Shown in pieces: positions 37,650 to 63,203 of a stretch of DNA of 64,000 nucleotides. Made by a program: the position numbers and the translations under genes. The notes under the pieces were generated by a model. That model did not search any database and was not told the origin of the DNA. It saw only the letters and a program-made list of their open reading frames with translations. Origin of the DNA: Epithemia pelagica (lineage: Eukaryota > Protista > Bacillariophyta); NCBI GenBank assembly GCA_946965045.2, contig OX337242.1:310001-374000 (forward strand). Reading direction: 5' to 3'. The first letter of the stretch is position 1. Each line of letters starts with the position of its first letter.

Positions 37650-40010
37650 TTAGAGTGGTTCTCGATCCTTGAGCAAAGTTGGCATGTTCATATCCTTCAT
37701 GACGGTATCCAAATACTGTCTTGTCCATTGTCCTTGGGCATTGCGAACCGCCAATTTGATAATGTTGTTGGTTGGTGAATCCTTGTCCGTGTCCTTCTGG
37801 TGGCTGTTGTTCGTCGACGCGGTCTCTTTCTCAACGTTCTTGTTGTCCGTAGTATTCGTGCTTGTTTCACAATTGGGGTCATTGGAACCATTTCGATGCA
37901 TCATGACATAAACGGCAAAGAGTGGCTGAGACGGTGCAGAAAGGACTTTCTTTTTCTTGTGGCGTTTTGTGGGACGGGTCGAGTAGGATGAAGTGGTTTC
38001 GTGTGCATGCGTCTCGTTGGAACTGTCTGGATGTTGTTCTTCTTGTGTCGGTGCTCGTGTCGCCTGCTCTTGTTGTTGTTTGCCATGAACATGAACTTGT
38101 TGCACAATGCACAATCCAGCCGATTGCGCCGCGGCCTCGACCCGATCATGATTGAGCCAATTTTCACACACCACAAATCGCCCGTGCGGAACAGCCAACC
38201 ATTGAGCGGCTGTGTGGACATAGGCTTCAATGCCACCTCGAAATTCACATCGTGCCGGAGCCGAAGCCATGGCAGTCGGCATGCCACCCTGACGAATCAC
38301 CGCACGCGTCGTGGCCAACGAAGTCGTTGTACTGGAACACGTTGCTATCGTCCTTTCTGGATCAGTCATTGGTACGGCGGGGCTTTCACGGGTGGGCCTG
38401 TCGTTGCTTGCCGCACTCGAAATGGATTCATGTACAGGATTCTCATGTTTTGGGTCATTTTTCTCGAGTGGTGACACCCGTGCGGGTTCCGGTACAACAG
38501 CTGCTTGTTTGGCACGAATGGTGGTTTGGAATTCGACCCGAAAATAGGGTGGTGTACCAGTAATTAAATCAAATGCTTGGGGATGACCCTCATGATTGAG
38601 GGGATTGTAATTGCGAAAATCAGAATGTACGACTTGGACCCAGCCATTAAGTGTGTCCTTATTGTGATTGTCAATCGAGTACCGCTTGGGTTGGTCGTCC
38701 TGTTCGTTTTCGAGTGGTTCTAAATTAAAGGAAAGCGATCGTTGGGCCAAGGCCACGGCTTGGCTTCGGGCTTCCACCCCAATGGCAGTGTGCAAGGCTA
38801 CGCCTTTTCGCACAAGACTGGACCATACCACCATTTGCAACACACTGGCATTGCCGGTTCCCAAATCCAAATAACAGAGGCGACCATTGTCCTTCTTCTT
38901 GTCTTGTCGGAGGAGCGCTGGAAATTGTTGCGCCGCACACCATGCCGTGACCAAATCGTCGGTCGTCCATCGATGATTTTGTACTTGCTGCAAAATCCGC
39001 CAGGATCCGGTCAAGCGACACAATTCTTCGCCCACACTGGGAATCCAATTATGAATCGGAAGGGCCGGGCGATTGTCGTCCTTGTTGTCCTTCTTGAATT
39101 GTTTCTTCTTGTTGTTGTTGCTGTTGGTATCCATCTCATCTACTTTGTCGGCCAAGTCATGTTGTTCTTGTTCCTGTCGTATCGTTTGTAGGACATGAGG
39201 TGTCAGATCGACATGATGGCCTTGCGCATCGGCTTGTTCCAACACTAATTTTATCCACGGTTGGTTGCCTTTTGTTTCTTGTTGCAAGGCCCAGGGCAAG
39301 GGTCCACAGGGACTATAGTCGGAGGGGAGACAGGCTCGTGTAATGCGGCCGGGACGATGAGACAAGGGCCGTGCTTTCATCCATCCACGACCCTGACATA
39401 CGCGACAAGGAGTGGATGTAGGAGTGGTTGTTGTTGAGGTACTGCTGGCTGTAGGAGTGGGTGCGTTGTTCGGAGGGCATTCGGTGTTCTGTCTCATGGT
39501 GTCGTCAGTGAGTGGTTGCTTCTTGCGTTTCTGTTTGGACGACAAAGGTTTGCTTTCCACACGACCCGATCCCTGACATTTCCAGCAGATCGGACCTCGT
39601 TCGGCCGTAGGCTCTTGGAGATTAGCTTCGCCGCTTTTTCCCTCGTACGTTTCCTCAATGAATTCTCCATCGTCTGATGCTGCTTTCAGATTGTTTTGAT
39701 GTGCTGCTGTTTTCGGTCTCATCCTTGTCGAACTTGAGGTTTGTGGAAACGGTTCCACAGAACTGGACTGGTTCCATACAGAACTCCATCCAGGAGCATC
39801 CGCCTCCAAACTAGGATTCGACATACTGCATTCGGCCAGGCCACTCCTGAAATTGGATACATCCTTGTCCCGTTTCGAAGCGCCATCATCACTCCCTCCA
39901 TGTACTATTTCTATTGCCTTTGCAGTTTCCGACTGAATCCTGGACGACGGCGAGGTGGATACAGGGAACAAGTATCGGTGCCGAAGGACGGTGGTCGGTT
40001 CCTCCTCCAT
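37650..40010 (-). CDS. SAM-dependent methyltransferase (TrmN6/MTS-like) with two CxxCxGxG motifs
   Basis: Motif I YLDLGTGNASV, motif IV FDLITGTPPYF, ARCEFRGGIEAY, HRWTTDDLVTAW. CWKCQGSG and CRVCQGRG near the N-terminus. Confidence 0.85.
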   Translation of the reverse strand: MEEEPTTVLRHRYLFPVSTSPSSRIQSETAKAIEIVHGGSDDGASKRDKDVSNFRSGLAECSMSNPSLEADAPGWSSVWNQSSSVEPFPQTSSSTRMRPKTAAHQNNLKAASDDGEFIEETYEGKSGEANLQEPTAERGPICWKCQGSGRVESKPLSSKQKRKKQPLTDDTMRQNTECPPNNAPTPTASSTSTTTTPTSTPCRVCQGRGWMKARPLSHRPGRITRACLPSDYSPCGPLPWALQQETKGNQPWIKLVLEQADAQGHHVDLTPHVLQTIRQEQEQHDLADKVDEMDTNSNNNKKKQFKKDNKDDNRPALPIHNWIPSVGEELCRLTGSWRILQQVQNHRWTTDDLVTAWCAAQQFPALLRQDKKKDNGRLCYLDLGTGNASVLQMVVWSSLVRKGVALHTAIGVEARSQAVALAQRSLSFNLEPLENEQDDQPKRYSIDNHNKDTLNGWVQVVHSDFRNYNPLNHEGHPQAFDLITGTPPYFRVEFQTTIRAKQAAVVPEPARVSPLEKNDPKHENPVHESISSAASNDRPTRESPAVPMTDPERTIATCSSTTTSLATTRAVIRQGGMPTAMASAPARCEFRGGIEAYVHTAAQWLAVPHGRFVVCENWLNHDRVEAAAQSAGLCIVQQVHVHGKQQQEQATRAPTQEEQHPDSSNETHAHETTSSYSTRPTKRHKKKKVLSAPSQPLFAVYVMMHRNGSNDPNCETSTNTTDNKNVEKETASTNNSHQKDTDKDSPTNNIIKLAVRNAQGQWTRQYLDTVMKDMNMPTLLKDREPL

Positions 40011-40585
40011 GATGGTGCTTTGGGATATAGCAGTACAACACTCCTATTGGTCTTTAAAAACAAACGTTTTTGTGTTTGTGTGTCGTGATTTCAATCAAGA
40101 CTTGTCGTCGTTGTCGTCGTCGACTTATTGTTGATCCCTCTCTTTCCAACCGAGGATTCTCCTGTCGTCGTTCTTCGTTCGGTTCTCTGGTCATGGTCTG
40201 TGCTGCATCTCATCGGTCCAGAAATTGCTAATGTGAACCGCGATGGAGCTGTTAGGTAGGTAGTGGGTACTCCTAGCCCTTTCTCACTGCAATGACCCAC
40301 TGGCGAATTCCAGACTCCCCTGAGTCGCTTTTGAAGTGGATCCTATCAGCGGTCGCGGAAACCGCGGAAGCTTGGAACATCTTCGATGCAATCGTGCGTG
40401 CCGCATCGGTACTGAAATGGCCTATACACCGAGATTCATGGGGACTCGTGCCAAACTGGCAACAACGATCTTTCATCGAGTGTATATCTTTCTTTCACGC
40501 ATGCGTTGTTCATTCCTCTCATTGTTTGAGGAACGGCCAAAGCAGCAGTGAGGAGCTCAATCAAACAAACAGACGACGAATCATC

Positions 40586-41776
40586 ATGAAGGTTTCTTCC
40601 CCCTCTCTTGTTTGGACCAGCCTTGCGGTGGTGGTGGTGGGTTTGTCATCGACTGCCAGGGCAGCGACCACCTCGAACTATAATGACGATGATGATGCTT
40701 GGAAGGTGGTGGGTCACAAACAAGCGGGGTATGCCTGCAATGCGACTGGTGTCACGGAACAGTGTGGTGACCTGGTGTGTGGGGGAGGTGTCAAAATGTG
40801 TTTGCAGGCGACACCGGTGACGGCAACCGCCACACCAGCCAAGACACACCACCAAGCATTGGCCGCCCTGGTCGCCACCGAGCTCCAAGGACAAGTCCAG
40901 CAACTCTTGGTTCCCCAAGACCCGCAAGACTCGTTCTGGTTGCCCTCGGAAGAAAGCATGGAGGAATGGCATGATATGGAACAAACCATGAAGTTGGCCA
41001 CAGACAATAGTTTGGTCGAGCCCTTTGACAAGATGGAACGGACAATGGTCTTTGGAGGAGGTGCCAAGATGGAATTCTGCTGCAAGGTTTCGTATGGTAT
41101 GAAGAATGGAACCTTTTACAAAATGGCTCATTGTTCCTTCAAGGGTGAGAAAAAGGGTGCGGTAAAGCCAGAGGATGGACCCGAAGAACAAGCCGGTGGT
41201 ACGACCCACAAGCAGTTGCGATCCCCCGAACCCCTCGTCATGGTCGACCCGGTTCCTCCTCACCATTACAAGAAGTATCCGGCGTGGAAGGTGGTGGCGC
41301 ACAAACATGCCGGGTATTCCTGCAATGGAACAGGTGTCACGGAACAATGGGGTGATTTGGTGTGTGCGGGTGGCCTGCAAATGTGTTTGCATGCCACCCC
41401 GGCCGTGCCTCCTCCACACGTGGCCGATATGGTGGCGATGCAACTTCAAGGACAAGTGGTACAACTCTTTGGCCAAGACCACAATTATCTCTTGCCCCAC
41501 CAGGACACGATGCAAGAATGGAAGCACATGGAACAAGAGGCAAAAGCGCTTGAGGCAAACCAAGGAGTAGTGCCGCAGGATGATTTTGACCGTACCATTG
41601 TCTTTGGAGGAGGAGCCAAGGTACAAGTTCACTGCAAGGTCTCGTATGGGTTTGACAAGAAAGACAAGAAATTTGACAAAACGATTGGTTGTGAACTCAA
41701 GGGAGAGAAAAAGGCCAGTGTCAAACCCGATCCCAGCCATTTTGACTGGAACAATATTCCTTCCTATTCTTATTAG
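40586..41776 (+). CDS. Secreted protein made of two tandem copies of an unrecognised ~150-aa Cys-containing domain
   Basis: Signal peptide MKVSSPSLVWTSLAVVVVGLSSTARA. Repeats at ~40697-41169 and ~41282-41731 (AWKVVxHKxAGYxCNxTGVTEQxGDLVCxGG...VFGGGAK...CKVSYG...CxxKGEKK). Confidence 0.88.
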   Translation: MKVSSPSLVWTSLAVVVVGLSSTARAATTSNYNDDDDAWKVVGHKQAGYACNATGVTEQCGDLVCGGGVKMCLQATPVTATATPAKTHHQALAALVATELQGQVQQLLVPQDPQDSFWLPSEESMEEWHDMEQTMKLATDNSLVEPFDKMERTMVFGGGAKMEFCCKVSYGMKNGTFYKMAHCSFKGEKKGAVKPEDGPEEQAGGTTHKQLRSPEPLVMVDPVPPHHYKKYPAWKVVAHKHAGYSCNGTGVTEQWGDLVCAGGLQMCLHATPAVPPPHVADMVAMQLQGQVVQLFGQDHNYLLPHQDTMQEWKHMEQEAKALEANQGVVPQDDFDRTIVFGGGAKVQVHCKVSYGFDKKDKKFDKTIGCELKGEKKASVKPDPSHFDWNNIPSYSY

Positions 41777-42215: not shown

Positions 42216-42932
42216 CTAGGAGTAGTACTGTTTCCACCATCCATAACTGGAGGATGATTCGACCGTCCATTCGTCATCGTCGCCTTGGAGGAGGACTGGC
42301 AAGGTGGTGGGAGTGGATCGCTGTTTGCTAAAATGAGCCGCCAAGGTCATCTTTGTGTTGTTGGTGCTGCTGCTGGTGCCAGTACTCGAACTTGGTTGCA
42401 GTGTTTTGGGATCATAAACATCGCCCAAGGTGGTTTCCAACACTGGATAGGACTCGTGTCGTCGTGGTCGTTGTGGTGTGGATCGTCCCGAACGGTGGTA
42501 CTGGTGGTGGTCACTGGTGTAGCAAACATCTGCCGTTCGTACCCGACGACCTGTCGTCAGGTTGAATTTGACGGCCGTACCGGAGGAAGACGAGGCTGGT
42601 GATGCTTTGGAACCGCATCTTTCCGTAGCCTCCACCAATTCGTGATTGAGTAGAATGAGTTCAAAGGCATCGCCTCGGCTCAACACTGCCACTTCTCGCC
42701 CAAACCATTGGTGGTGATGCTTCTTGTTGTCGTCGTCGTCGTCGCTGTTGGACACGTCGTGTTGTCGTTGCGGTTTTGCTGCGGCATGTGGTTTCGGTTC
42801 GTAGTAGTAAAGTGATGGTTGCTTGTCTTGGTTTGGCAGGGCCACACGAGGGTGGTTCTTTGGTTTGGCCCTGGTGGGCAAATGATGGGGATACATGGAA
42901 GATTTACTGGCCGTGGACCATGGCATGGTCAT
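42216..42932 (-). CDS. Cluster family A protein 1 (disordered, VAVLSRGDAFELI motif)
   Basis: Open frame from ATG 42932. Motif GREVAVLSRGDAFELILLN plus YPVLETTLGDVY. Confidence 0.7.
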   Translation of the reverse strand: MTMPWSTASKSSMYPHHLPTRAKPKNHPRVALPNQDKQPSLYYYEPKPHAAAKPQRQHDVSNSDDDDDNKKHHHQWFGREVAVLSRGDAFELILLNHELVEATERCGSKASPASSSSGTAVKFNLTTGRRVRTADVCYTSDHHQYHRSGRSTPQRPRRHESYPVLETTLGDVYDPKTLQPSSSTGTSSSTNNTKMTLAAHFSKQRSTPTTLPVLLQGDDDEWTVESSSSYGWWKQYYS

Positions 42933-43062
42933 GGATTCGAACCGATCCAACAAACAAACGTGAAACCACTGCGGCAAGGAGGATGAAGTGGATTGACGAC
43001 TGCAAGAAATTGGAATTTGGAGATGAATCGTCGTGTCCAATCATCATGCTCATTCCTGGTAT

Positions 43063-43227
43063 CATCCGTTGGACTGTGCTGTACCGTGACTGTTGAGGTT
43101 CTCTATACTCTCAACGTTCCCCTTCAACGGTTCCACTCACGTGCATAGACTCAAAGTTCTTTTGGTACTAGGTAGCATGCTCATGGTGTTCACCACACGG
43201 CGGTGCGCCGCCAACCTCCAACGGATG
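43063..43227. promoter_or_regulatory. MSA-like boxes in the divergent promoter of A1/A2
   Basis: catccgttgga at 43063, ttcaacggtt at 43123, tccaacggatg at 43217. Confidence 0.6.
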
Positions 43228-43638
43228 CGAGGCACATGGTCGAGGCGTGTACTTGTGTGACAGCGCGACGAGACTTGTTGGCATCAAGTTTAGTCGCCCT
43301 TAGATCACTCTCTCATAGGGTCATCAGCGTTTTGGAGTCGCGCATTATTGCAATGGTGTGCGCGGTGGATTCCAAAATTTGGATTCTTGCAACTGCTCCC
43401 AATCGAAAAAAACCTCCAGACGTTGAGCCCATCATCGTCGTCTCCAACCGTTTGGACGACTGCTGTAGACTTAACAAAAGCAACAACAACCACAAAGGTG
43501 TGGATTCGTGGCACGGTCACATCGCGTTAAGCCCTCGGAGAAGCTATTGTGTCCTTCTGGACGGTTCCACCTCGATATTGATTGCATCGGATTGTTGGTG
43601 GTTGAGGAGACGACAAGTACCTCAGTGTCATCGACACC

Positions 43639-45282
43639 ATGGTCCGTCGGGACGACGAAAGTGACCATGCCTTGTATGTAGCACAGTCGTTTCATCATCA
43701 TCATCATCATCGTCATGAGAATGAAACTGTAACAACCCACAGGAGCAGCAGCAACAAGAAAACGACAACAACACGAAAAAAGAAGAAGAAACAGGCTCCC
43801 TCTCCCAAGCAAATGGGAAGCATTGTCATTCTTCGTCAAGGGGAAGCCTTTGAACTCGTCAAAATGTACCCCACCACTCCTCCGACGACCAATTCGAGCG
43901 GTCCAACATCAACAACAAAAACCACCAAAACCACACGACGTCCTTCCAGTCCATCTCCAAGCAATAGGCAAGGTCCACAACGATCATCATCACCAAAGGA
44001 ACAAACTCGTCGTCCCGAAACACCCAAGGATATGCTCGACTTGACGGTGACTCCCACAATGGATACACGTGTCGTTCAAAATACCATTCACCCCAAACAC
44101 GACACTTTACTACCACCATCACCATCCCTGTATGCGGCCAACGAGGCGACTAGTTTTGATACCTTTACGTTGGATGTGGACCACATGGATGAGAATGAGG
44201 ACTGGGACATGTCAACTCCCGAAATGTCGTTGGACCGCACCCGAACACCAGACCAAACCACAAGGTCCCCCACAAGCATGCCCCAAACAACACGTTCACG
44301 ATCTCCTCCATTGCCAAGAGCCGCATCTCCTCCTCCTACAACGACTCCTCGACGAGACACGAATGGAATGGAACCCACCATCCGAATGACTTCTCGATCG
44401 GCCATGCAGAAGGAACGCAACAGTCCCAGTCGAACCAACACTCCTCCTCCTACTTCTTCTTCCAACCCCTGCATCTTGCGACGCGATGCCAGTGCCAATA
44501 GTATTTTGGAAACGGCATCGTCGTCTCGACCCGAAACTCCCGTTGCACGACAACCACCACCACAACCACAACGACCTCCCCCACGGTCTCCGACCCCCTC
44601 CATTGAGTGGAACACCAGCACTGCTACTACTCCGACGACTCGTGCGATGGATCCTCCCGACAGTCGTAGTAGTCCAGAGGACGAGACGGTGGCTCCTCAA
44701 CCATCACTCCTCCTCCCCACCCGACGCATTTTCCACACGGTTCAGGCAACCACCATGCCGCCACAGAGGCAGCAGCACCAGCAGCCACCAACACAACAAC
44801 AACCACAAAAGCAGCAGCAAAAGCAGCAACCACAAAAGGAGCAACAAGAACGCGGCACTGTACCAACCACCACCACTCGTCGAGTTTCGATTCAAGACAT
44901 GGATACCAAAGTAACGCAAATTGCGACGCAGCAACAGAAAGAACACGAACACAACGAGACAGACGATGATGACGACGATGATGATGAGGATGAAAGTGAG
45001 GCCTATGATCACTTTGATCAGGGCACGCTCGGTACGGGACCCTCGGACGACGACGATGGCGATGATTCCCTCATTACCTTTATTCAGCTCGACGAAGACG
45101 AAGATGATTCCTTGGTCCCCACGATTGGTGGAAACGGCGACGACGACAAGACGATTATTCCCATTTTAAAATGTGGAGCAAGTTGTGGTGCCACCTACGA
45201 ACTGATTGGTCTGAATGAAGACACGTACGAACTGTCCTGTGGACGTGGATGGATCAAACGATCTCGAGGATGGGGCACCTAA
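43639..45282 (+). CDS. Cluster family A protein 2 (Pro/Ser/Thr-rich disordered, terminal motifs)
   Basis: 547-aa ORF. N-terminal motif GSIVILRQGEAFELVKM; C-terminal motif IIPILKCGASCGATYELIGLNEDTYELSCGRGW. Confidence 0.85.
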   Translation: MVRRDDESDHALYVAQSFHHHHHHRHENETVTTHRSSSNKKTTTTRKKKKKQAPSPKQMGSIVILRQGEAFELVKMYPTTPPTTNSSGPTSTTKTTKTTRRPSSPSPSNRQGPQRSSSPKEQTRRPETPKDMLDLTVTPTMDTRVVQNTIHPKHDTLLPPSPSLYAANEATSFDTFTLDVDHMDENEDWDMSTPEMSLDRTRTPDQTTRSPTSMPQTTRSRSPPLPRAASPPPTTTPRRDTNGMEPTIRMTSRSAMQKERNSPSRTNTPPPTSSSNPCILRRDASANSILETASSSRPETPVARQPPPQPQRPPPRSPTPSIEWNTSTATTPTTRAMDPPDSRSSPEDETVAPQPSLLLPTRRIFHTVQATTMPPQRQQHQQPPTQQQPQKQQQKQQPQKEQQERGTVPTTTTRRVSIQDMDTKVTQIATQQQKEHEHNETDDDDDDDDEDESEAYDHFDQGTLGTGPSDDDDGDDSLITFIQLDEDEDDSLVPTIGGNGDDDKTIIPILKCGASCGATYELIGLNEDTYELSCGRGWIKRSRGWGT

Positions 45283-45451
45283 GAAAGAATGAATGAATAA
45301 ATGAGGCTACCCGATACCCAAGAACCGACATTCAATGTATATGATGATTCTAAGATAAGCGTTTGAAACAGCAGTGTTCTGTTTGCCCCAACAAGAATGG
45401 ATCCTCGTCGTCCTCTAGGGTCTCTACTCTAGGAGCATAACTGCAAAAGAC

Positions 45452-45649
45452 CCGTTGCTGCGGTTTCTGGGGTTCTGGTCGTCCAGTCGCTTAGCGACTG
45501 AAGCATTGCGTGCTGCGCGTGACGGACAAGTTCCCATAGATTTATGGTGACTTTCGCCGTATCCGTTGGACAGGACGCGATCGCAAAAAGGCAACGTTTC
45601 AACGGATCCATGGCCATAAATATTACTATAGCCGAGGATGTCAACGGAC
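45452..45649. promoter_or_regulatory. Four MSA-like boxes upstream of A3
   Basis: CCGTTG at 45452 and 45563; CAACGG at 45600 and 45642. Confidence 0.6.
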
Positions 45650-45896
45650 CAAAACGTTACAAGTTTCCCCATATAGATGAGGCTGGGAACGTTGGAAGAC
45701 AAAAAGTCTAAGAAAAGGACTGGCAACAAGGACAACCCGGCAGAGGAAGACCACAGAGATCGAGAGGTTCTTTATTCGTGGGCTTGAAGGGAGGAAACGA
45801 GGGGCCAATATAACAGATCAACATTTAAAGAACAGGGACCATCAATCAACACTTTTGAAATACGCAGTTGGATCTCTCTCTCTTTGGCACGAGACA

Positions 45897-47465
45897 ATGA
45901 CGGATGGAACGATTGCAACGTTCACTCCTACTGTATCCAAGCCAACGATGATACGATCCTTTCGCGACGACTCGTCGACGAGTGGATGGAGTTCGTCGGT
46001 CAAGACGGTGGCGTTGAAAAAGACGGAGTCGGGTCGGATTGTCATTTTGAGTCGAGGGGATACCTTTGAGCTGGTCAAACTCATTCCCGATTGGACTGAC
46101 AATGAAGACAATCAATCGGTGGTCAGTCGAGTCCCACAGGCTACCTTTTCCAGTGACAATAGTACCGTTGCGTCCATGATTATGAGTGAATCAATTACCA
46201 GACGAGCAAGGACCAAGCAACCCATTCGGTCCCCTGCCGATGCCAAGGTTGCAAAGCCAACGGTGTCGTTCAAAGATCCTCCCGACACGACATGGCATGT
46301 ACCAGCAACAATACCCGAGATGGAAAGCGTGGATGGCAGTGGATTCATGGAAGATGACATTGTACGAAAACACAGCTTTTCGGATGTGCGACTAAAAGAA
46401 GAAGAGGAGGAGGAAGATGACGACGAGGAGCACATCGACCACATTCACCAGGATGATTGGGATGCCAATGGCAGTGAAGAAGATGATAAGTATACAGTCA
46501 CTGAAGAAGAATCCAACCAGGAGGATGAAAAGAGAGACGACGTTACAAGGACATCGGCCTATGATGACGACAATACCAGAATAACTGCAGATGATGACGA
46601 TGATGATGATATCACAAGATATTCCATTGATGATCAAGTGGGAGGATCCAACACAGCGGTACGGCTCATTGTACGAAAACACAGCTTTTCGGATGTGCGA
46701 CTAGAAGAAGAAGAGGAGGGGGATGACGACGAGGAGCACGTCTACCACATTCACCAGGATGATTGGGATGCCAATGGCAGTGAAGAAGATGATAAGTATA
46801 CAGTCACTGAAGAAGAATCCAACCAGGAGGATGAAAAGAGAGACGACGTTACAAGGACATCGGCCTATGATGACGACAATACCAGAATAACTGCAGATGA
46901 TGACGATGATGATGATATCACAAGATATTCCATTGATGATCAAGTGGGAGGATCCAACACAGCGGTACGGCTCATTGTACGAAAACACAGCTTTTCGGAT
47001 GTGCGACTAGAAGAAGAAGAGGAGGGGGATGACGACGAGGAGCACATCGACCACATTCACCAGGATGATTGGGATGCCAATGGCAGTGAAGAAGATGATA
47101 AGTATACAGTCACTGAAGAAGAATCCAACCAGGAGGATGAAAAGAGAGACGACGTTACAAGGACATCGGCCTATGATGACGACAATACCAGAATAACTGC
47201 AGATGATGACGATGATGATGATATCACAAGATATTCCATTGATGATCAAGTGGGAGGATCCAACACAGCGGTACGGCTCAATCATCATACACGAAAGAAG
47301 GAGCAACAACGACATCAGGATGATGAGACTACAATGAACAGTGCCGTCGTTCCCTTTGTCCATTTTGGATCCGGGTTTGGCACAATGTATGAGCTCGTAC
47401 AGGTAAATGTGGACACACTGGAATTCTTTTGGGGAAGAGGTTGGGTAACGTACGACGCACCATAG
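45897..47465 (+). CDS. Cluster family A protein 3 (highly acidic, with a triplicated 102-aa block)
   Basis: ATG at 45897. N-terminal motif GRIVILSRGDTFELVKL; C-terminal motif VVPFVHFGSGFGTMYELVQVNVDTLEFFWGRGW. Confidence 0.85.
   Translation: MTDGTIATFTPTVSKPTMIRSFRDDSSTSGWSSSVKTVALKKTESGRIVILSRGDTFELVKLIPDWTDNEDNQSVVSRVPQATFSSDNSTVASMIMSESITRRARTKQPIRSPADAKVAKPTVSFKDPPDTTWHVPATIPEMESVDGSGFMEDDIVRKHSFSDVRLKEEEEEEDDDEEHIDHIHQDDWDANGSEEDDKYTVTEEESNQEDEKRDDVTRTSAYDDDNTRITADDDDDDDITRYSIDDQVGGSNTAVRLIVRKHSFSDVRLEEEEEGDDDEEHVYHIHQDDWDANGSEEDDKYTVTEEESNQEDEKRDDVTRTSAYDDDNTRITADDDDDDDITRYSIDDQVGGSNTAVRLIVRKHSFSDVRLEEEEEGDDDEEHIDHIHQDDWDANGSEEDDKYTVTEEESNQEDEKRDDVTRTSAYDDDNTRITADDDDDDDITRYSIDDQVGGSNTAVRLNHHTRKKEQQRHQDDETTMNSAVVPFVHFGSGFGTMYELVQVNVDTLEFFWGRGWVTYDAP
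46359..47279 (+). repeat. Coding tandem repeat, 3 copies (309, 306, 306 bp), near-identical
   Basis: attgtacgaaaacacagc starts at 46359, 46668 and 46974. Confidence 0.97.
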
Positions 47466-47790
47466 TGGCTGCGACAAATCCACCAAAAGGGAAGGGGATG
47501 GGGGTGATCCATCATGTAGCTAGCAAATACTCGCGCTTCAAATTTTGTAAATTTGTTGTACTTGGAATGAAAGGCATTCCATTAGCAGTCATTCTATCTC
47601 TTTAGAGCACCCTTTGCGATCAAATAATGTTCAACTCCCATGGTCTCCGAAGCAACAGAACTACGGATAGCCTTCCAAGTCACACATTTTTCCTGGTCTT
47701 TTTGGCTGCACCTAGTCTAGCATCGGACAGAGAAAAGAGAGGGTAGGTTATAGAACATGACCCATTAGATAACGACTTAGAGAAGGTATC

Positions 47791-48024
47791 CATCCGTTGA
47801 GCACGTCCGGAGGGTTTTGTTACCTACCCCCAAGCAGGGGTGAGTCCAGTCCCGCGTGTCTGAAAGCACGACATGTGAGTAAGAGAATGTACCTTTAGGT
47901 ACGACTTATGTGCGACCTGGACTCACCCCTGCTTGGGGGTATTTTGTTACCGCAATCGCGCACATCCTGGACCATGTCCAAACATGCGGCAACAAATGGA
48001 CTTAACAACAATCAGTCCGTTGGA
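47791..48024. promoter_or_regulatory. Two MSA-like boxes upstream of A4, flanking the MITE
   Basis: catccgttga at 47791 and gtccgttgga at 48015. Confidence 0.55.
47825..47941. mobile_element. 117-bp MITE with perfect 25-bp TIRs and a 10-bp target-site duplication
   Basis: TIR tacccccaagcaggggtgagtccag (47825-47849) and its exact reverse complement (47917-47941). ttttgttacc is duplicated at 47815-47824 and 47942-47951. Confidence 0.92.
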
Positions 48025-48163
48025 TGCAAGTGTTGTTGTTATAGCACGAAGGAATAATCGGCTGTCTTTTGCAAGTCATGGAAGGTTCTGTTGAACAAAG
48101 AAACGTCTTGTCAGTTTGCTCCTCCAAGGTCTTGTTGGACCATTGCTGGAAACCATCCGCACC

Positions 48164-49342
48164 ATGGTAGTTCCAAGTCACTCGTCGTTTCGCGCCTCAT
48201 CCTCTCGGCAATCGTCGTCGTCTTGGATGACGGGTCGTCGAGAATGGCATCCTTCGACCGATTGGTATCCCACCCGCACTAGTGACCCGAGTTTGGTCGA
48301 ACAAGATGCCATTGCGGTCGGTTTGCTTCGTCACACGGCAGAGGAGGACGAAGCCGATTGGTATCCCATCGCCAATTCGTCACCCGAAGAACGATATCGT
48401 TCCACGACCATCCTCCAAGAAGAAGAAGAAGAGGAGGCGGATCATCAAAACTGGTCCTCGACCTCCTCCGCCAACGCAAGTCATTCCGGAACGAATGCTG
48501 TCAGCAAGCATCGTCGACACAAACCGCAACCAACGAACAATGACACTAACCAAGATGAGGATGAAGACCGAAATGTCCCGGACGAAACAGAACGCGACAC
48601 TCGTACACCAGACAAGACAACGCAAGACACGAGAACCACCACGAGGAATCATCCGACGAAATCAAGGGACACAGACAGAGACCGTGTCCTGAAAGAAGAA
48701 GAACAAGACGAGCAACAAGAAGAAGAACAGGATATGCGAGAGGACGATGATCAATCGCTCCATTTACGATCGGTAGCACTCGTGGCGCCAGATTCCGAGA
48801 CGTATGCGCTCATTCGAGTCAATACCAGCACGAAAGAAAAGGTTCAAAAGTGGAAGCGACGGCAACAAGAAAGGGGTTCGTTCATGTCCGGTAGTAGTAA
48901 TAGCAGCACGGTCGAAGAAAACGACTCTGGGGACCAGCCGCCGCAGCCGTACATGCAGGACAGTGCATCGCATTCCTCGTCCAAATGCGGGGTGACCACC
49001 AGGAAGAGTCGAGACGACTACTCGTGCAGTCACTACACGGACGCAGGAACCTGCAGTTCCCAATCCTGGACCAATCTCCAGCGCATGCAACGGTCCAGTT
49101 CGCTCCCTCTGTTCCGGTCGGTCCCACAACCCCAAAGCGGCAGCAGCAACAGCAACAAGAGTCACCCAAATCCTTTCGGTGGTTCGTCCATGACGAGGAG
49201 AACGTCTTCAAACCAAAGTGCCCCCTCCCGCAGTCGTACCGGAAAGAGCCTCGGCGGTCCAGCAAAATCCAAAGATCGCACTCTACCACTACGCAAGGGA
49301 AGAAGTCTGGGTGACTTCCTTTCGAAAAAGACTCTTCGGTGA
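48164..49342 (+). CDS. Cluster family A protein 4 (disordered, one degenerate motif)
   Basis: Open frame from ATG 48164. RSVALVAPDSETYALIRVNTST resembles the family-A C-terminal motif. Confidence 0.75.
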   Translation: MVVPSHSSFRASSSRQSSSSWMTGRREWHPSTDWYPTRTSDPSLVEQDAIAVGLLRHTAEEDEADWYPIANSSPEERYRSTTILQEEEEEEADHQNWSSTSSANASHSGTNAVSKHRRHKPQPTNNDTNQDEDEDRNVPDETERDTRTPDKTTQDTRTTTRNHPTKSRDTDRDRVLKEEEQDEQQEEEQDMREDDDQSLHLRSVALVAPDSETYALIRVNTSTKEKVQKWKRRQQERGSFMSGSSNSSTVEENDSGDQPPQPYMQDSASHSSSKCGVTTRKSRDDYSCSHYTDAGTCSSQSWTNLQRMQRSSSLPLFRSVPQPQSGSSNSNKSHPNPFGGSSMTRRTSSNQSAPSRSRTGKSLGGPAKSKDRTLPLRKGRSLGDFLSKKTLR

Positions 49343-49345
49343 TTG

Positions 49346-49869
49346 GTCCGTTGATTCATTGTGCTTCTTGATGCTATATGGTATTTATATTAGTAGGAGT
49401 ATATCGTTGATTGGGTTATAGGAGTAGTTTTGCGCAAGCATTGTCTTTATTAGAGAGCGACTACGGAAAGGGATCGTTTTCTTTTGTGTCCGTCGAATAG
49501 GTAGCATACCTAGAGTTTCTAGCACTCCGTCTGTAGGATGTCGAAAATTCGCAGCGAACTGACTGTCTGCGACTGACTGACTGTTGTGGGTGTCTATGCG
49601 AGCTCGCCGCGCACCCACAACGCATCCAACCGCCAATGGCGCACAGTTCGTCTAACTGAGCCTCTATGTAGGCAAACGTTTGGAAGATGGGGACAATACG
49701 CAAACGTACCATGGACTTAGCAGGACGATGGCGCACTGATAAGAAAGAGGGAGGAATCGGTGGTGTGGAAAAGAGAGTAGTTGTTGGATGGCCACTCTCG
49801 GTATCGTCGTTCAACCTCCGGAAACGATTGCCGGATTGTAATATTGCTTGGCGCTTGGCATCCGTTGGA
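49346..49869. promoter_or_regulatory. MSA-like boxes upstream of B1
   Basis: gtccgttga at 49346 and catccgttgga at 49859. Confidence 0.55.
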
Positions 49870-49960
49870 TTATTTTTACCATCTTCACCTCCCACCGCAA
49901 CGACCAGAATAACAACTTCTACCGTGCCATTCTCTTGTTGTAAAATTTGGAGGTTGGACC

Positions 49961-52253
49961 ATGCCCGGTCGATCAAGTGGGAAAACCTCCAAGGGGAGTG
50001 GACGCTTCTCCATTGGTGGAAGACGGAATAGGAACAAAAATAAGAAGGAACGCAATGAAGCCGTCATTATGATCGATGGCGGTGCCTATCGCAAGCCACC
50101 ACCACCACCACCACTACGAACCCCCACCACCACCTACAGTGATGTCGACGAATCTTCCTTTGTCCTAATGGAAGATCAAGAGTATCTAAGAGACGAAACG
50201 ACAACTCCGTTTGAGCAAGAACATGAAGAAGAAGAAGAAGAAGAAGAATGGACCGCCGCAACACCGTTTGTCATGGACCGATTACCCTCCACCAAACCAG
50301 CAACCATGGGTGGCAAACGGTACCACCACCACCCAGCCGAGGTACCACCACAACGCCAGGCTCTGGACCCGTACGACGAAGAAGAAGAAGACGAAGAGGA
50401 TGTCACGTATGCACTCGAAGAAGAGGTGCTAACCCAACTCTTGGAGGAAACAGTCCTGACCGAACCACCACCCTCAATACTGCCGGAAGAAGAAGAAGAA
50501 GAACTAGACGAAGAAGAGATGGAGGAGCTGGTGAAACACACGCACGACGCCGATTCGGCCATTTTTTCCAATACCTTATCCAAACTCACGGACGATGCTC
50601 AGTCTGCGGCACCCTCAGTCGATACGACTGTATTTTCTCAAACAATTTGGCAGTTTGAGTTCGTCCGAATTCATAGCCAAGGATGCTCTCAAGGATTTTT
50701 TGTTGGTGGGAGCAGGATCCAAGCGCAGTCGTCGATCGGCCTCTCCTGTAAACCGACCAGCTTCACCACACAAACAACCACCGCAGTCCAACTATCCGCC
50801 TGCTACTACTTCACATGAACGAGACGACCTGGAGACAGTCGAAGGTAGGATGGAGCCGTCCAGACGAGCATTTCCACCCAGCCAGGAACCCCCACTTCAA
50901 CAAGAGGAGAATGATGAGGAACAAACCAATCTTTCCATGGATGAATATTCCAACTCTCTCGTGGAAAAGAAGAGGAAGCGGATGACTTCACGGAACGACC
51001 CGAGGCCACGATCGTTACTTCGGTGGTCGAATCCTATGCACCACCCCCACGACCCTCCACGCAACAACAAGCACCACAGTGGAATCGCAAGACCACCAAG
51101 AAACTACCCAAAAAGGGCAAACTCGGCAAGGGCCGATCGTCCATGGGAGGTCGTCGGCCCATACCGGCCGCTCTTCCTGCGATTCGAGAAGACGATGCCA
51201 TTTCCGAAGGGGCAGAATCTTACTCGCAAGCGTCTTCGGGCACCTCGTCTCAGTCCAAGGGAGCCATTTTATATGCTGTCAGTGTCCCACAACGAAAAAA
51301 GAAGCCGAGCTTTCTCGGTCGAGCCTTTCGTCGGAACTGACCAGCGTCCCTGGATGAAGAGGACGACTATTACAATGACGATGAAACACGCGACTATTCT
51401 GTGGAGGACCAAGAAACGCGCCTGTCTTCCGTGGTGCCAACATCCAAACCAGTGCGAGGCCACCCACCCACCATGGCGCATCGTAGAGAAAAGCCGCAGC
51501 AACCGATGCAACGTGGTTACAACAACGAGAATAATAAGACTCCTGGAGCCAGGCTATCATCATCGGCGGTGGGGAAATCACCACGTCGGTACGATGATCC
51601 CAGCTTTTTGGATGTAGAGGATGAGATTGCGACACTGGATAGTGGTGCCCTGGAAGAAACATCCGTGACCGAACTACTATCCAAGATTGACGCAGATTTG
51701 AACTCACTTTCTCTCTTGACGTCGTCTCATCATCTAAAGGGTGACGATGAGTACTCCGAGTCTTTGAAATCGTCTCAGTTGGATTATGATGATGAAGATG
51801 ACGACGATGATGATTCTCGAAAACCCATGAAGGTTCCTTCGTTTGTGCATCCGACCGATATAGAGTCGGCATTGGGAGACATATCCCTTAGTGCATCGCG
51901 ATCCAGTGTCTCGCAAGAATCCGAAACCACAAGAGAAACAGGTGTCAGCGATAAAGATTCCATGACCACCTTTTCCAAAGTTTGCCGATGGCGCCTCCAT
52001 GGGCACCACCACGTTGGCAGGTGACGACGATGATTCGAGTGGCGACAACAATATCAAAATGATGCAAGATACCTTCTTTGATACGGCTGTATTTTTTGGT
52101 TTGAAAAAAGAAAAACCAACACCCGAAGACGATGACTTTAGTCAAATAACACCCGTCAACTTTGGCTATTTCGGAAGCGCCTTGAAAGATTCTGCACTCT
52201 CAGTATTTGCTCCATCGGCGAAGAAGAAAAAGAGCCAAGGCCATGCAAACTAG
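49961..52253 (+). pseudogene. Cluster family B member 1, interrupted by three 1-bp frameshifts and one in-frame TGA
   Basis: Coding-like sequence runs through ORFs 49961, 50595, 51023, 51401 and 51999. Shifts occur at homopolymers near 50635, 50967 and 51978, with a TGA at 51338-51340. It ends in the family-B motif QDTFFDTAVFFG...DDFSQITPVNFGYFGSALKDSA. Confidence 0.75.
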
Positions 52254-52493
52254 TGTTTAATCGAATATAATTTATGTTAACTGTGTATATATGCATCCAT
52301 TTCTCTTAAGCGTCACATTGTGTCGAAAAACATCCTGAAAGAACGACTGGGTGTGGTTAAGGACAATAGGATCCTCTAGCCTATTGAAATACATAGCATA
52401 GGTAGTCTTTGATGAAATAATAGGTGTACTCCTAGGAGTAGTTAGATAGAATAGAGGAAGGTAGCAAAAGATACCCTCTGAAGTACGAAGATG

Positions 52494-52565
52494 CATCCGT
52501 TGAGCATGGGATGTCACCGATATCAACTTTGGGCAACACTTTTGCATCGAGCATCCCAATAACGG
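52494..52565. promoter_or_regulatory. MSA-like boxes upstream of B2
   Basis: catccgttga at 52494 and taacgg at 52560. Confidence 0.5.
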
Positions 52566-52951
52566 TAGAATGGCAGTTGAATGGATTGATGCCACATAGA
52601 ACCAAAAACCAGACATCCCCCAACGTACGAGGGATATTAGACCATAGCGGTCCGTTTATTTCTTTGCCGTACACAGCGCACCCAATTCTGACACTCGTGA
52701 GAGTATGGCTTCTATCTATGATGCTATCTACGAATGTCTTGTGCGGCTCTTGCAGAAATGTCGATGAGTGACAGCCAAGCCGTTCCGGGATGCACCGAAT
52801 TTAAGAATTGCCATGAAAGAGTTGTGACGGTTGAGCTGCGTCAAGGAATTTTTCATTCACCCAAACGCTTTTGCACCACAAAGAATAGACCCATTTGTCG
52901 TGTCGTCTCATTCCTGAAAGCATATTCACAGTCACCAAGGGCAACATTTCC

Positions 52952-54409
52952 ATGAGGGTTGAGCGACGAAACCAGAAGGCATCCGACGATGCGACCATGA
53001 TTGTGGACCCCACTGCGTCCTTGAGCTTTTCGGGAGCTGCTCCGGCTACAATGAAGCGTTCGAGCTTGTCAAGGAAGCGGCAACAAGTTCCACTTCGTCG
53101 ACTGGACACGAGAAGAGGTCCCTCTGCCATGGCAGGATCAGCGAGGACTGCACAGCAGCCAACAAGAAGAAAGGCAGGCAAGGGTCGCTGGAGACGAAAT
53201 GTTGTCAAGAATGTATCACAACGACACATTCCAAGTCTTCCTGTGGTTCATGAAGAGGAGAGTATGCCCGAGCTGCCGATTGAAACAACACCGGAACTGC
53301 CTAGAGCGACTCTTGCTGTTATAAAAGCCGCTCCATGGAGTGAAACTTCCTCCTCCTCCAAGTCGTTTGTCGAAAATACAATCGAAGGTGTCATGAAAGA
53401 AACGAACAATGCCATCACGTATATCAATACCGATGCCCAAAAGGATCTTTCTTCGAATTTCAATGCGGTGAGTGCCTCACTCTCGGATTCCTTTGGATAC
53501 ATTGAGAGTTATGTGATGAAGCCTCCCTCTCTCCGATCTACCGCCGGGGAAAAGTCCAACCAACAAGGTTCGTTTGACGTCATTGCCCGTCTACGAGAGG
53601 AGTCCAGGCTCGAAGATGAAGCCATGATGAAAACACAACGAGAATCAAGAGATGAGAACAGGGACTCGTCGGATGATATTATCGCCCCAATCACTTTTGC
53701 ATCGGATGCGCAAGATTATTTCCCGGAAGAAACAGAGGAAGAGACAGAAACCCATGACCACAACCAGGAACGAGACGCTGCTCCAGATCTTGAAGAGTCC
53801 GTTGATGACGAAAGGAATGAGGAATCTACAGAAAACGAGGCAACCGATATAATTCCTGTCGGTGAGATGCTCCGTATCCATGACTCTAGTTCGGATGTGG
53901 AGATTATTGCGAGTTTTATCAATGCCCAAGTCTCTCAGTCCCATGTGGAAGTTGTCATGAACTGGACCCATTCTGGACTTGAATCAGTTTCAAGTGCTTT
54001 GAGCAGCTTTGGCAAGTCCCAACTCGACTCATCCTCTCATGACATGGCAGAAGACTCAGACGATGAGGATTCGGTGGCATCGGAGGAACCCATTGTTGTC
54101 ATTCCGACCGACACTACAGAAACCGAGTTGGTGCTCAACAAGAGTTCGGAGGAACCCATTGTTGTCATTCCAACCGGCACTACACAAACCGAGTTGGTGC
54201 TCAACAAGAGTTTGTCCAACGACGAACAAAGTTCCACATCTCAAGACAGAATGGACTTTTCTTTTCAAGACACGTGGACGAAGACTGCCGAGATTATGGG
54301 CTTGAGTTCTCCACATGACACGAGCTCGGATCTCAACCATGCCGCCTTGATGAATCCACTTGCTCTTATAAGGCAAGCCAGGACTGAAGAAGATTCCCAA
54401 GGACAATAG
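52952..54409 (+). CDS. Cluster family B member 2 (basic N-terminus, acidic disordered body)
   Basis: Open frame from ATG 52952. KAGKGR...IPSLPVVHEEE resembles B1 KLGKGR...IPAALPAIREDD. C-terminal QDTWTKTAEIMGL. Confidence 0.8.
   Translation: MRVERRNQKASDDATMIVDPTASLSFSGAAPATMKRSSLSRKRQQVPLRRLDTRRGPSAMAGSARTAQQPTRRKAGKGRWRRNVVKNVSQRHIPSLPVVHEEESMPELPIETTPELPRATLAVIKAAPWSETSSSSKSFVENTIEGVMKETNNAITYINTDAQKDLSSNFNAVSASLSDSFGYIESYVMKPPSLRSTAGEKSNQQGSFDVIARLREESRLEDEAMMKTQRESRDENRDSSDDIIAPITFASDAQDYFPEETEEETETHDHNQERDAAPDLEESVDDERNEESTENEATDIIPVGEMLRIHDSSSDVEIIASFINAQVSQSHVEVVMNWTHSGLESVSSALSSFGKSQLDSSSHDMAEDSDDEDSVASEEPIVVIPTDTTETELVLNKSSEEPIVVIPTGTTQTELVLNKSLSNDEQSSTSQDRMDFSFQDTWTKTAEIMGLSSPHDTSSDLNHAALMNPLALIRQARTEEDSQGQ
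54080..54211 (+). repeat. Coding tandem repeat, 2 x 66 bp (SEEPIVVIPTxTTxTELVLNKS)
   Basis: Units start at 54080 and 54146. Confidence 0.93.
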
Positions 54410-54841
54410 TCCAAAGTCATTCAATGCTCTTAATGAGTGACAAAGTTCCCACGTCAAAGGTAACCTTCGTGTCCATCCTCGGCACAATTCGTATATGTCC
54501 TATCTTTGGATCTACTTGTGTTTTGTTCATAATATGATAAATTCCTCTCATTTTGCCCATTCTATTCCATAGAGACTCCATGATAACTCTACCCGTCTGA
54601 TTATTTCATTCGCACAAGCGACCACCAGAACGGAACCAAATCTCAAAGCAGTCGCACTGTCTGTCACAGAGATCTATGCCCTTCTCGTTAGCGATTGCAC
54701 AATTCCTTATGCCCCATGGCAGACGCATGTCAAAAATGGCCCGGATAAGTGAATGGGCTTCCGTCTGAAATACGTTGACTCCCTACCAATCTTTGTTGTT
54801 ACTTATGAAGTTAAATGTGTTCATTGTCTAACTCTTCTTTG

Positions 54842-54927
54842 TCAACGGACAACATTGTCGTATGTCCACGTCTCAGACGACAACATTCATAAGTAAATCC
54901 GACCGTTGACCGAGAGGAGCCAACGGA
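54842..54927. promoter_or_regulatory. Three MSA-like boxes upstream of B3
   Basis: CAACGG at 54843, CCGTTG at 54903, CAACGG at 54921. Confidence 0.55.
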
Positions 54928-62900: not shown

Positions 62901-63203
62901 GGAGCTGACTCCATGATGGACGAGGAAGTTGATGCGTCCTCCTGGAAAGTCAGCGTTCTAGACGGAGATACTTGGAACGCTGCAATCGACTTGTTGGGAA
63001 TATCCAGGGTGATGGGATGCGAGTGTCAAGATGACACGAGTCAAACAACCCCCGTAAATGCACAATTCTTTGACAATGCCATGACGGATTCGGCCCGTCA
63101 TGTCATGTCGCCCTGGTGGAATGATGAACGTCGATCCCGCCGAAAACCGTCCTCACGCAAGAGCCGTTCCAGACATTCCTATTCCGCATATGACCGAAAC
63201 TAA
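59979..63203 (+). CDS. Cluster family B member 4, 1074-aa disordered protein
   Basis: Uninterrupted ORF. Internal repeat (T/S)HADFxLxxxSxExE and a short coiled-coil-like segment. C-terminal DTWNAAIDLLG...DDTSQTTPVNAQFFDNAMTDSA. Confidence 0.85.
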   Translation: MMRRRWFVKNRQAVKEEKKVETSINPAASFELVNKSNRRKDKKNKSSTARAVEAPSKEQPQSQEQRDEISGSADREPSKVPERDKAPLKTHADFFLHSMSLEEEELAKTLGNKNTVNVSRASSSNRCASPEPTTTSHADFILSTLSQEQEQQALVAVLSAVEALKAKSQDAVSNLAQIVSAIDSIEESPDSSDGRAMVSVLPKSDAPSIPNYVEADEDGDDDIVSNENNTLTYQSMTAGERLTRFAGCMVPMALVGGCAGDELKTTESVDAEIAAATKAQKKTKDKKKVHGKAKREDKSEPPKAPLDKLVDTMEDQIKGVFGESGELGNRPRHAKSSAVQGSPSGSTAPESDVEEEAAPSVPAQEEEQGMSDDSVTELETPAAPVAISTTEAKAMEDMIRAQREMGLGSRMRLEVVKEEEEKQLLEMKTTSKSEDMTVSFDSLSKSNSRTVVRSMTKDSLNAIDEHAEQEDDQAKEQKLETVDELVSQTGKKNKKAADSSKKSKRGNRLFKGGGKPWKTKMQFSSKAKNMDAAVDTESDAEVNQPKPEEKTPEPSVQEQMLPPHPPQAKKNILDEKKSQIETDHSLEELPTTESTVSVESIVEKLKLYNEANRSGSLDETDGFLKKLESDKATSRKEASPNTRGHEEGRLAETQSGSTDSYDMNPIPKDTPTSQPSPVENKEVIGGVVDESGTAEKARKEGRGRKKKSRTAVDGKPPRPARRATGEKNLNPVIVSSTSRDSDSAFSNKSARSKNSDAGSKTKKKTRRNNSMDTASSKSSQSSSDSIAKHQDKQQEEPPLSVGADSPATVEPSDRKTKRRFAGGKRSEQTQEKGGRRRLKGFLRSAVGQKSNNNNTQTIDNASGPANHSNEMNLDDKTGSKAAENTRSASPVEDVPQKTSSAANDSESDCFSGVVSSEEDDKDIVPDADTNQLVLSVKQVRSSAIEITTADSMDSELASALLEQSSSRLTEVSSMGADSMMDEEVDASSWKVSVLDGDTWNAAIDLLGISRVMGCECQDDTSQTTPVNAQFFDNAMTDSARHVMSPWWNDERRSRRKPSSRKSRSRHSYSAYDRN

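Follow-up and report, generated by a model that had tools for sequence, protein, structure and literature searches.

The question raised by this locus is what a short, hairpin-like motif does in proteins that consist otherwise of long stretches of disorder-type sequence. The locus is situated in a stretch of 64,000 nucleotides from the diatom Epithemia pelagica (positions 310,001 to 374,000 of contig OX337242.1, G000:C18:310001-374000; the window in the following), and the assembly searched comprises 60.5 Mb in 23 contigs. The window is eukaryotic, with a GC content of 45-55% and long intronless open reading frames (ORFs) for low-complexity protein. Four of its genes, A1 to A4, are arranged in tandem, contain no introns and carry the motif. 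Judged by sequence comparison, this Family A is an undescribed gene family, so far found only in Epithemia, and represents a well-supported orphan family with an undescribed, predicted beta-type motif, for which we infer a mechanism. In the reading preferred here, to which we give even chances, each copy of the motif would be an interaction module ordered by strand addition, two copies would make the chain a bivalent tether and the linker would be its spacer.

The N-like copies have the consensus VA[IV]LS-x-G-x-[SA]-FEL-[IV]-K-[LM]-N-P, a module of 17-20 residues. The conserved unit as a whole comprises 17-24 residues, is predicted to be strand-turn-strand and contains an invariant L, a frequent G and an N-P tail. 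The consensus is followed by P-x(1,2)-M-K in A5 and P0004, two members from outside the window that are described below. In most members the motif is located near the N-terminus, and A2, A3, A5 and P0004 have it a second time at or near the C-terminus. The C-terminal copy of A2 and A3 additionally contains NxDT-x-E...GRGW, and the same C-type form is present in the middle of the A4 chain. The loop of the C-type copies is 1-4 residues longer than that of the N-type, and the downstream copy in A2, A3 and A4 is, by its predicted fold, a derived version of the motif, extended in the loop and by one or two strands. The chains are for the most part hydrophilic, with 65-76% disorder-promoting residues (76% in A2), and the few hydrophobic peaks that stand out include the motif copies. 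The initial annotation, made from the letters of the window, had described the motif as set in long disordered sequence, which is consistent with this low-complexity, disorder-type composition.

All motif strings of that annotation could be recovered in A1 to A4 at the positions given there. A1 (42216-42926, minus strand) encodes 236 amino acids (aa) without an intron, and the protein starting at the same ATG is identical to P0003. Its N-like copy VAVLSRGDAFELILLNH (42642-42692, minus strand; aa 79-95) matches the copy VAILSRGESFELIKLN of Epithemia clementina with a BLASTP E-value of 1e-5. The gene also contains a degenerate internal copy, YPVLETTLGDVYDPK (42405-42449, minus strand), whose string 'YPVLETTLGDVY' had been proposed as the C-type copy of A1, and a degenerate C-terminal copy of the C-type, LPVLLQGDDDEWTVESSSSYGWWKQYYS (42219-42302, minus strand; LPVLLQG...YGWWKQYYS), which was aligned with the C-type copies of A2 and A3 using MAFFT. 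A2 (43639-45282, plus strand) encodes 547 aa, with the N-like copy IVILRQGEAFELVKMYP at 43822-43872 (aa 62-78), a linker that is rich in Ser, Thr and Pro and acidic further on, and the C-type copy IIPILKCGASCGATYELIGLNEDTYELSCGRGWIKRS at 45154-45264 (aa 506-542 of 547). The gene model rests on the open frame of 547 codons and the two motif copies.

A3 (45897-47465, plus strand) encodes 522 aa from an ATG that was set by its 316-aa partner P0001. The N-like copy IVILSRGDTFELVKLIP is found at 46038-46088 (aa 48-64) and the C-type copy VVPFVHFGSGFGTMYELVQVNVDTLEFFWGRGWVTYD at 47346-47456 (aa 484-520 of 522), all on the plus strand. The linker between them consists of three tandem acidic repeats of 306 bp (102 aa) at 46358-47280 (Tandem Repeats Finder: period 306, 3.0 copies, 98% matches). 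A4 (48227-49342, plus strand) encodes 371 aa from the ATG used by its partner P0002 (374 aa, 7.9% of residues different from A4); an earlier in-frame ATG is located at 48164. The C-type copy of A4, VALVAPDSETYALIRVNTSTKEKVQKWKRR, lies mid-protein (48773-48862, plus strand), and P0002 has a canonical YELI at the same site. The ATGs of A1, A3 and A4 match those of the independently called proteins P0003, P0001 and P0002. For A1 and for A5 and A6, which are located outside the window, exact proteins were found in a public collection derived from ENA, i.e., other gene callers arrived at the same models.

For the identification of further members, a HMMER profile of six copies was run against 1.84 billion protein representatives. 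Of the six matches, P0001 to P0004 were credible, all from Epithemia. P0001, P0002 and P0003 correspond to A3, A4 and A1 of the same species and stem from ENA contigs. The fourth, P0004, is a protein of 427 aa from E. clementina (KAL7563480.1, ACA910_008783), for which a 96%-identical copy exists (KAL7557687.1). It carries two N-like copies, VAILSRGESFELIKLNPE at residues 36-55 and VAILSRDQTFELIKV at residues 363-378, separated by a long linker that resembles nothing. A search with P0004 against the E. pelagica genome resulted in A5 (G000:C18:378217-379011, 264 aa), its closest relative in that genome, located 4 kb past the end of the window among genes of the 'DxWxxAxELLG' family. A5 starts with MKETNVQVAILSEGHSFELVKLNP and ends with ...FVAVLSMEEAFELVEISPTMK..., and a probable internal copy was detected (6 of 1000 shuffles). 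A6 (G000:C1:6450552-6451574, 340 aa), found with an improved profile, is encoded on another chromosome and has one N-like copy, VAILSTTDSFELLHMNP, at residue 53; a 'DDEGT[IV]V' stretch is common to A6 and the E. clementina protein. The proposed position of the motif at both ends of the chain holds for A2 and A3 and was found again independently in A5 and P0004. For A4 it does not, since there is one convincing copy, and the extra copies of A1 are marginal.

Between the E. pelagica and the E. clementina proteins, the motif is the sole stretch that can be aligned. The divergence between orthologues of the two species is reported to be roughly that between human and pufferfish orthologues (PMC12377750). 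In the six N-like copies of the E. pelagica genome, different codons are used at 66 of the 132 positions with identical residues. Because half of the kept residues have changed codons, the similarity is due to selection on the peptide and not to recent gene conversion or copied DNA. This bears on the possibility that the motif itself is without function, being either the slowest-decaying remnant of an ancestral sequence or domain in young, rapidly diverging duplicates or part of barely functional orphan ORFs. Compared to a second haplotype or strain, 5.1% of the residues differ in A3 and 7.9% in A4, and three changes are located inside motif residues, including an E to A exchange in the core of A4; together with the tiny size of the family and its restriction to one genus, this would fit a lack of function. 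However, the motif is all that can be aligned between the species, residues are kept where half of the synonymous sites have changed, open frames of 236-547 codons are maintained and A5 differs from its partner at 1.1% of the residues only. A motif without function is regarded as very improbable.

A second point is whether the N- and C-type copies are related at all. The six-frame translation of the window (103,014 aa) contains six instances of the hexamer [FY][EA]L[IV]x[LVM], all of them in the ORFs of A1 to A4, compared to 1.08 instances in shuffled sequences. Since this pattern was derived from the same data, two less circular tests were made. In the first one, a position profile of the second strand was built from eight N-like copies only, five of them from outside the window, and the three C-type copies ranked 7th, 8th and 12th of 89,298 window positions. 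In the second one, the C-type segments were locally aligned, with gaps, to the eight N-like copies and compared with 1000 composition-preserving shuffles each. The observed score was reached by 0 of 1000 shuffles for A2, 0 of 1000 for A3 and 1 of 1000 for A4, and no shuffle (0 of 1000) reached the score of the A4 C-type copy against those of A2 and A3. Hidden Markov models (HMMs) built from the N-type copies alone do not recover the C-type copies, and the reverse search fails as well. By these comparisons the relationship is real but distant, and hexamer count, profile ranks and shuffle tests bear out the common core that had been claimed for both types.

The remaining candidates for additional copies gave weaker results. 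In the comparison with the N-like copies, the string 'YPVLETTLGDVY' of A1 gave a marginal result (62 of 1000 shuffles). Among 12-mers, it matches the internal 'ILETTTGDKFEK' of P0004 best (49 of 2000 shuffles), and the order of the copies along the two chains is the same. For the C-terminal LPVLLQGDDDEWTVESSSSYGWWKQYYS, the comparison with the C-type copies of A2 and A3 was likewise marginal (48 of 1000 shuffles), and the extreme C-terminus of A1 appears, marginally, to be a better positional match to the C-type copies than 'YPVLETTLGDVY'. Neither the C-terminal tail of A4 (LPLRKGRSLGDFL) nor a hydrophobic patch near the end of A6 was significant against the motif. The ORF adjoining A4 (49961-50818), with 'AVIMIDGGAY' and 'FVLMEDQEYL', was rejected as a motif carrier (156 and 209 of 1000 shuffles).

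In Pfam, PDB sequences, the ESM Atlas, the protein collections and the JGI metagenomes, the searches point to no relative outside Epithemia. A Pfam scan of A1 to A4 and two flanking ORFs revealed no credible family. A1, A2 and A4 have no match above the cut-off, in agreement with the initial annotation, in which no Pfam family had been recognised, and the Cu-oxidase_2 match of A3 (24.7 bits at a cut-off of 20.4) was taken as a low-complexity artefact of the acidic repeat linker (aa 241-337). The profile search with the motif alignment proposed there was run with HMMER, and all its credible matches were Epithemia proteins. Two motif profiles gave chance matches only in the PDB sequence search, namely to the lipase 1thg (E = 0.66) and to AAGAB 9ddt ('GFELVELSPEE', E = 1.2). 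The ESM Atlas yielded no usable match. In a word search of 5.8 billion proteins, the C-terminus of A3 found only P0001. Word searches of proteins with the motif region of P0004 and with the whole of A2 found only P0004 itself in the first case and no homologue among the best 8000 candidates, which were taken up by low-complexity words, in the second. A protein-pattern scan of the JGI metagenomes confirmed nothing, and two low-GC matches to a 40-bit DNA pattern were considered to be chance.

Among the representative matches, P0005, a protein of 3696 aa with repeats 'GKVAALNSAGTAYELV', was rejected as chance (0-10 bits per repeat); the repeats presumably recall those of phage tail fibres. P0006, a repeat protein of the wasp Trichogramma, was likewise rejected as chance. 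Pattern and HMM scans of the E. pelagica genome resulted in several weak candidates that were excluded from the family: 'ILSLHESFEIVKINPS' (L006) lies in a Trp-rich frame that is probably non-coding, and 'VAILSSVECFELTK' (L007), 'VVLRSRSNFELVSLNDT' (L009) and 'YEFVVVNSDT' (L014) are in frames of only 54, 46 and 60 aa, respectively. L008, L010 and L011 were weak as well and are not counted as members. In the L009 frame (L009:3052-3189, G000:C8, minus strand), VVLRSRSNFELVSLNDT stands at the very start and matches the motif well, down to the 'N-D-T' of the C-type; the frame may be an exon, a pseudogene fragment or chance.

The motif was also compared with known short motifs and folds. No copy has a basic and an aromatic residue in the register of the PP1-docking motif RVxF ([RK]-x(0,1)-[VIL]-{P}-[FW]; by inspection). 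A leucine-rich nuclear export signal has four hydrophobic positions with the spacing of classes 1a-d, 2 or 3; by inspection, the consensus VAILSRGESFELIKLNP fits none of these. The RGD adhesion motif is present only in A1 and A3, and the other copies have QGE, RGE, EGH, MEE, TTD or RDQ. For the three-strand C-type copy, a WW domain would be recognised by two conserved Trp at a distance of 20-22 residues, a conserved Pro and a Pfam WW match; there is no Pfam match, and a single Trp (in GRGW) is conserved. The motif resembles the beta1-beta2 hairpin of the ubiquitin-like beta-grasp. A full fold of this type comprises about 70 residues with a helix and strands 3-5, and in Family A low-complexity sequence directly follows the N-like copies and neither Pfam nor PDB sequences gave a match.

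For the structure of the motif, AlphaFold2 (AF2) was run on single chains with the few available homologues as alignment. In the model of P0001, the N-like copy forms a hairpin (strands 48-53 and 56-61) with a predicted local distance difference test (pLDDT) value of about 36, and the C-type copy forms three strands (YELVQVN, TLEFFW and GWVTYD) with values of 57-60; for the whole chain, the mean pLDDT is 42 and the predicted template modelling score (pTM) 0.16. In A5, hairpins were predicted at both copies (6-12/16-22 and 230-234/240-244; pLDDT 42-46), with an overall mean pLDDT of 43.5 and a pTM of 0.18. Strand-turn-strand was assigned at all three N-like copies modelled, and the call is consistent across them. 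The two faces of the predicted hairpin each carry hydrophobic residues (V-A-I-L and F-x-L-[IV]-x-L), which means that the hairpin should not stay exposed and must pack against something.

In the preferred reading, each copy would become ordered by adding its strands to the beta-sheet of a common folded partner or of another copy, two copies in one chain would result in a bivalent tether or cross-linker, and the linker would serve as a spacer that evolves fast and varies in length. Several observations weigh against it. At the motif, AF2 reaches low confidence values (pLDDT 36-60), which makes even the hairpin a prediction. Only one convincing copy is present in A4 and in A6, so bivalency would not be universal. 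The haplotypes or strains are separated by so few substitutions that a stronger constraint on the motif than on the linkers does not emerge from them. Furthermore, A2, A3 and A4 as read here have no exact match in the protein collection.

If the sheet to be extended is that of another copy in a strict sense, the N- and C-terminal hairpins would pair with each other, either within the chain, forming a loop closed by a sheet of 4-6 strands, or between chains, forming head-to-tail polymers or gels with a mesh set by the linker. This would give the two hydrophobic faces of the hairpin something to pack against and fits the copies near both ends in A2, A3, A5 and P0004 as well as the AF2 hairpins at both copies of A5. 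In addition, the two copies of P0004 are alike at 11 of 16 positions, compared to 8 of 16 for the C-terminal copies of P0004 and A5. On the other hand, the AF2 folds are not confident (pTM 0.16-0.18 and the low motif values given above), and A4 and A6 each have a single convincing copy. With the extra copies of A1 being marginal as well, two matched ends are not obligatory.

The linkers provide a further argument. The 102-aa repeat of A3 is present in three near-identical units in the window and in one unit in P0001, which is from another contig of the same species; the linker repeats are a copy-number polymorphism within the coding sequence. A polymorphic linker length, with three repeats in A3 versus one in the other haplotype or strain, argues against a precisely set spacing by linker length, as the initial annotation had suggested it. 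The same three-fold difference speaks against a pairing of the terminal hairpins, and we consider such self-pairing to be unlikely.

Another possible partner for strand addition is a ubiquitin-like protein. FEL[IV] or YEL[IV] would then act as an LC3-interacting region or Atg8-interacting motif (LIR/AIM), VAIL or IVIL maybe as the core of a SUMO-interacting motif (SIM), and the proteins would be bivalent adaptors of autophagy or SUMO. The general LIR pattern is [DEST]-x(0,2)-[FY]-x-x-[ILV], which fits all 11 strong copies; in the narrower form [DEST]-x(0,1)-[FY]-[EA]-L-[IVL] it is found in 11 of 11 as well. LIR and SIM patterns are very short and frequent by chance, however, and as the copies are homologous, the 11 matches amount to one observation. 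The hydrophobic run (VAIL, IVIL, VAVL, IPIL, VALV) fits the psi-psi-x-psi core of a SIM, but the usual flank, an acidic or phospho-Ser tract, is not consistently acidic (S-R-G, R-Q-G, S-E-G, S-M-E). Daxx has SIMs at both termini; this parallel offers a lead rather than a test. Compared to known LIR/AIM and SIM ligands, Family A is alike in the [FY]-x-x-[ILV] core after an acidic residue, Ser or Thr, in the run of four aliphatic residues and in the setting in disordered sequence, and strand addition would match in kind. It differs in that the conserved unit is far longer than an LIR or SIM and has a fixed turn and a second strand. A ligand of this type is considered to be distinctly unlikely.

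The preferred reading of a disordered tether with conserved interaction modules may also be compared with known systems. EPYC1 of Chlamydomonas and PYCO1 of Phaeodactylum are likewise mostly disordered chains with only short repeated motifs conserved, presumed multivalency and fast lineage-specific evolution. In contrast to these, the motif of Family A is unrelated in sequence, is predicted to be of the beta-type and not helical, and occurs in one to three copies towards the chain ends instead of in regular repeats; a plastid-targeting presequence is absent and there is no known link to Rubisco. HET-s/HRAM, RHIM and bacterial BASS motifs resemble Family A as short terminal beta-strand-turn motifs next to disorder, sometimes with two pseudo-repeats per chain, and in neighbouring genes. 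Unlike these, Family A is without NLR, NACHT or effector domain, its pattern is not rich in G, N or Q, and all partners are disordered. In such amyloid signalling systems, the end of an effector protein and the N-terminus of an adjacent NLR-type protein carry the same motif; according to Pfam, no NACHT, NB-ARC or effector domain is encoded in A1 to A4 or the two flanking ORFs.

With respect to the location of the proteins, sequence inspection of Family A revealed no hydrophobic N-terminal signal or signal peptide. Basic clusters resembling a nuclear localization signal (NLS) are present in most members (RKKKKK, KKRPQK, RQRRRRRRQ), A2 is rich in S/T-P sites and the net charge of A3 is -92. The lack of a signal peptide, the disorder, the NLS-like clusters and the S/T-P or acidic tracts suggest that the proteins are probably nuclear or cytosolic.

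The spacers between the genes contain a box, YCAACGGAY, which was found 13 times in the window compared to 3.2 expected occurrences; 12 of the boxes are located within 43064-54850. Its CAACGG core fits what we take to be a Myb-binding site. Nine of the boxes belong to the spacers around A1 to A4 and the next ORF, inside them or at their edge, and seven of these nine are grouped by two or three within about 600 bp (mostly <400) upstream of the ATGs of A1 to A4: two at 43064-43226 in the divergent promoter spacer of A1 and A2, three at 45561-45649 upstream of A3 and two at 47792-48023 upstream of A4. No such box was found upstream of A5 or A6. Most of the 12 boxes within 43064-54850 are in the spacers upstream of A1 to A4, of the ORF at 49961 and of the first genes of another family, Family B. 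The boxes support, as a sequence signal, a co-regulation of the tandem genes and indicate nothing firm on its timing. A more far-reaching idea, which we regard as a long shot, is that the hairpins are self-complementary halves of a split sheet, forming a tunable head-to-tail polymer or gel that would be an Epithemia invention, e.g., for holding or partitioning the diazoplast or another structure at division. Common Myb-type boxes would fit an expression linked to cell division.

Family A proteins showed no similarity to Family B or to the 'DxWxxAxELLG' motifs. The Family B protein at 59979-63203 contains 'ASFELVNKSN' about 28 residues from its N-terminus, which corresponds to the second-strand core of Family A without the first strand and may be chance or a remnant. 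A 494-aa ORF (40292-41776) contains an internally duplicated unit with Cys residues (AWKVVGHKQAGY.CN.TGVTEQ.GDLVC.GG..MCL.ATP ... VFGGGAK...CKVSYG) and has no Pfam match. The 786-aa protein at 37650-40010 has a weak match to an Eco57I-type N6-adenine methyltransferase (E = 0.0011) with a 'TGTPPYF' motif in long low-complexity surroundings.

Epithemia diatoms are a model for a eukaryote housing a nitrogen-fixing endosymbiont. The two sequenced Epithemia species have many common gene families that are not found in other diatoms, and a single Epithemia-only family accounts for half of the small number of host proteins detected in the diazoplast (PMC12377750). [quoted passage not shown] Family A is a clean and small example of such genus-only families, with a defined module under visible selection. 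The module provides an experimental handle, since it can be used for pull-down peptides, point mutants and tags. In the case of self-association, it would represent a small natural "sticker" with two ends and a spacer that is free to vary, which would be of interest for the design of condensates and biomaterials. If it binds Atg8, SUMO or another hub instead, it would represent a new class of ligands in the stramenopiles.

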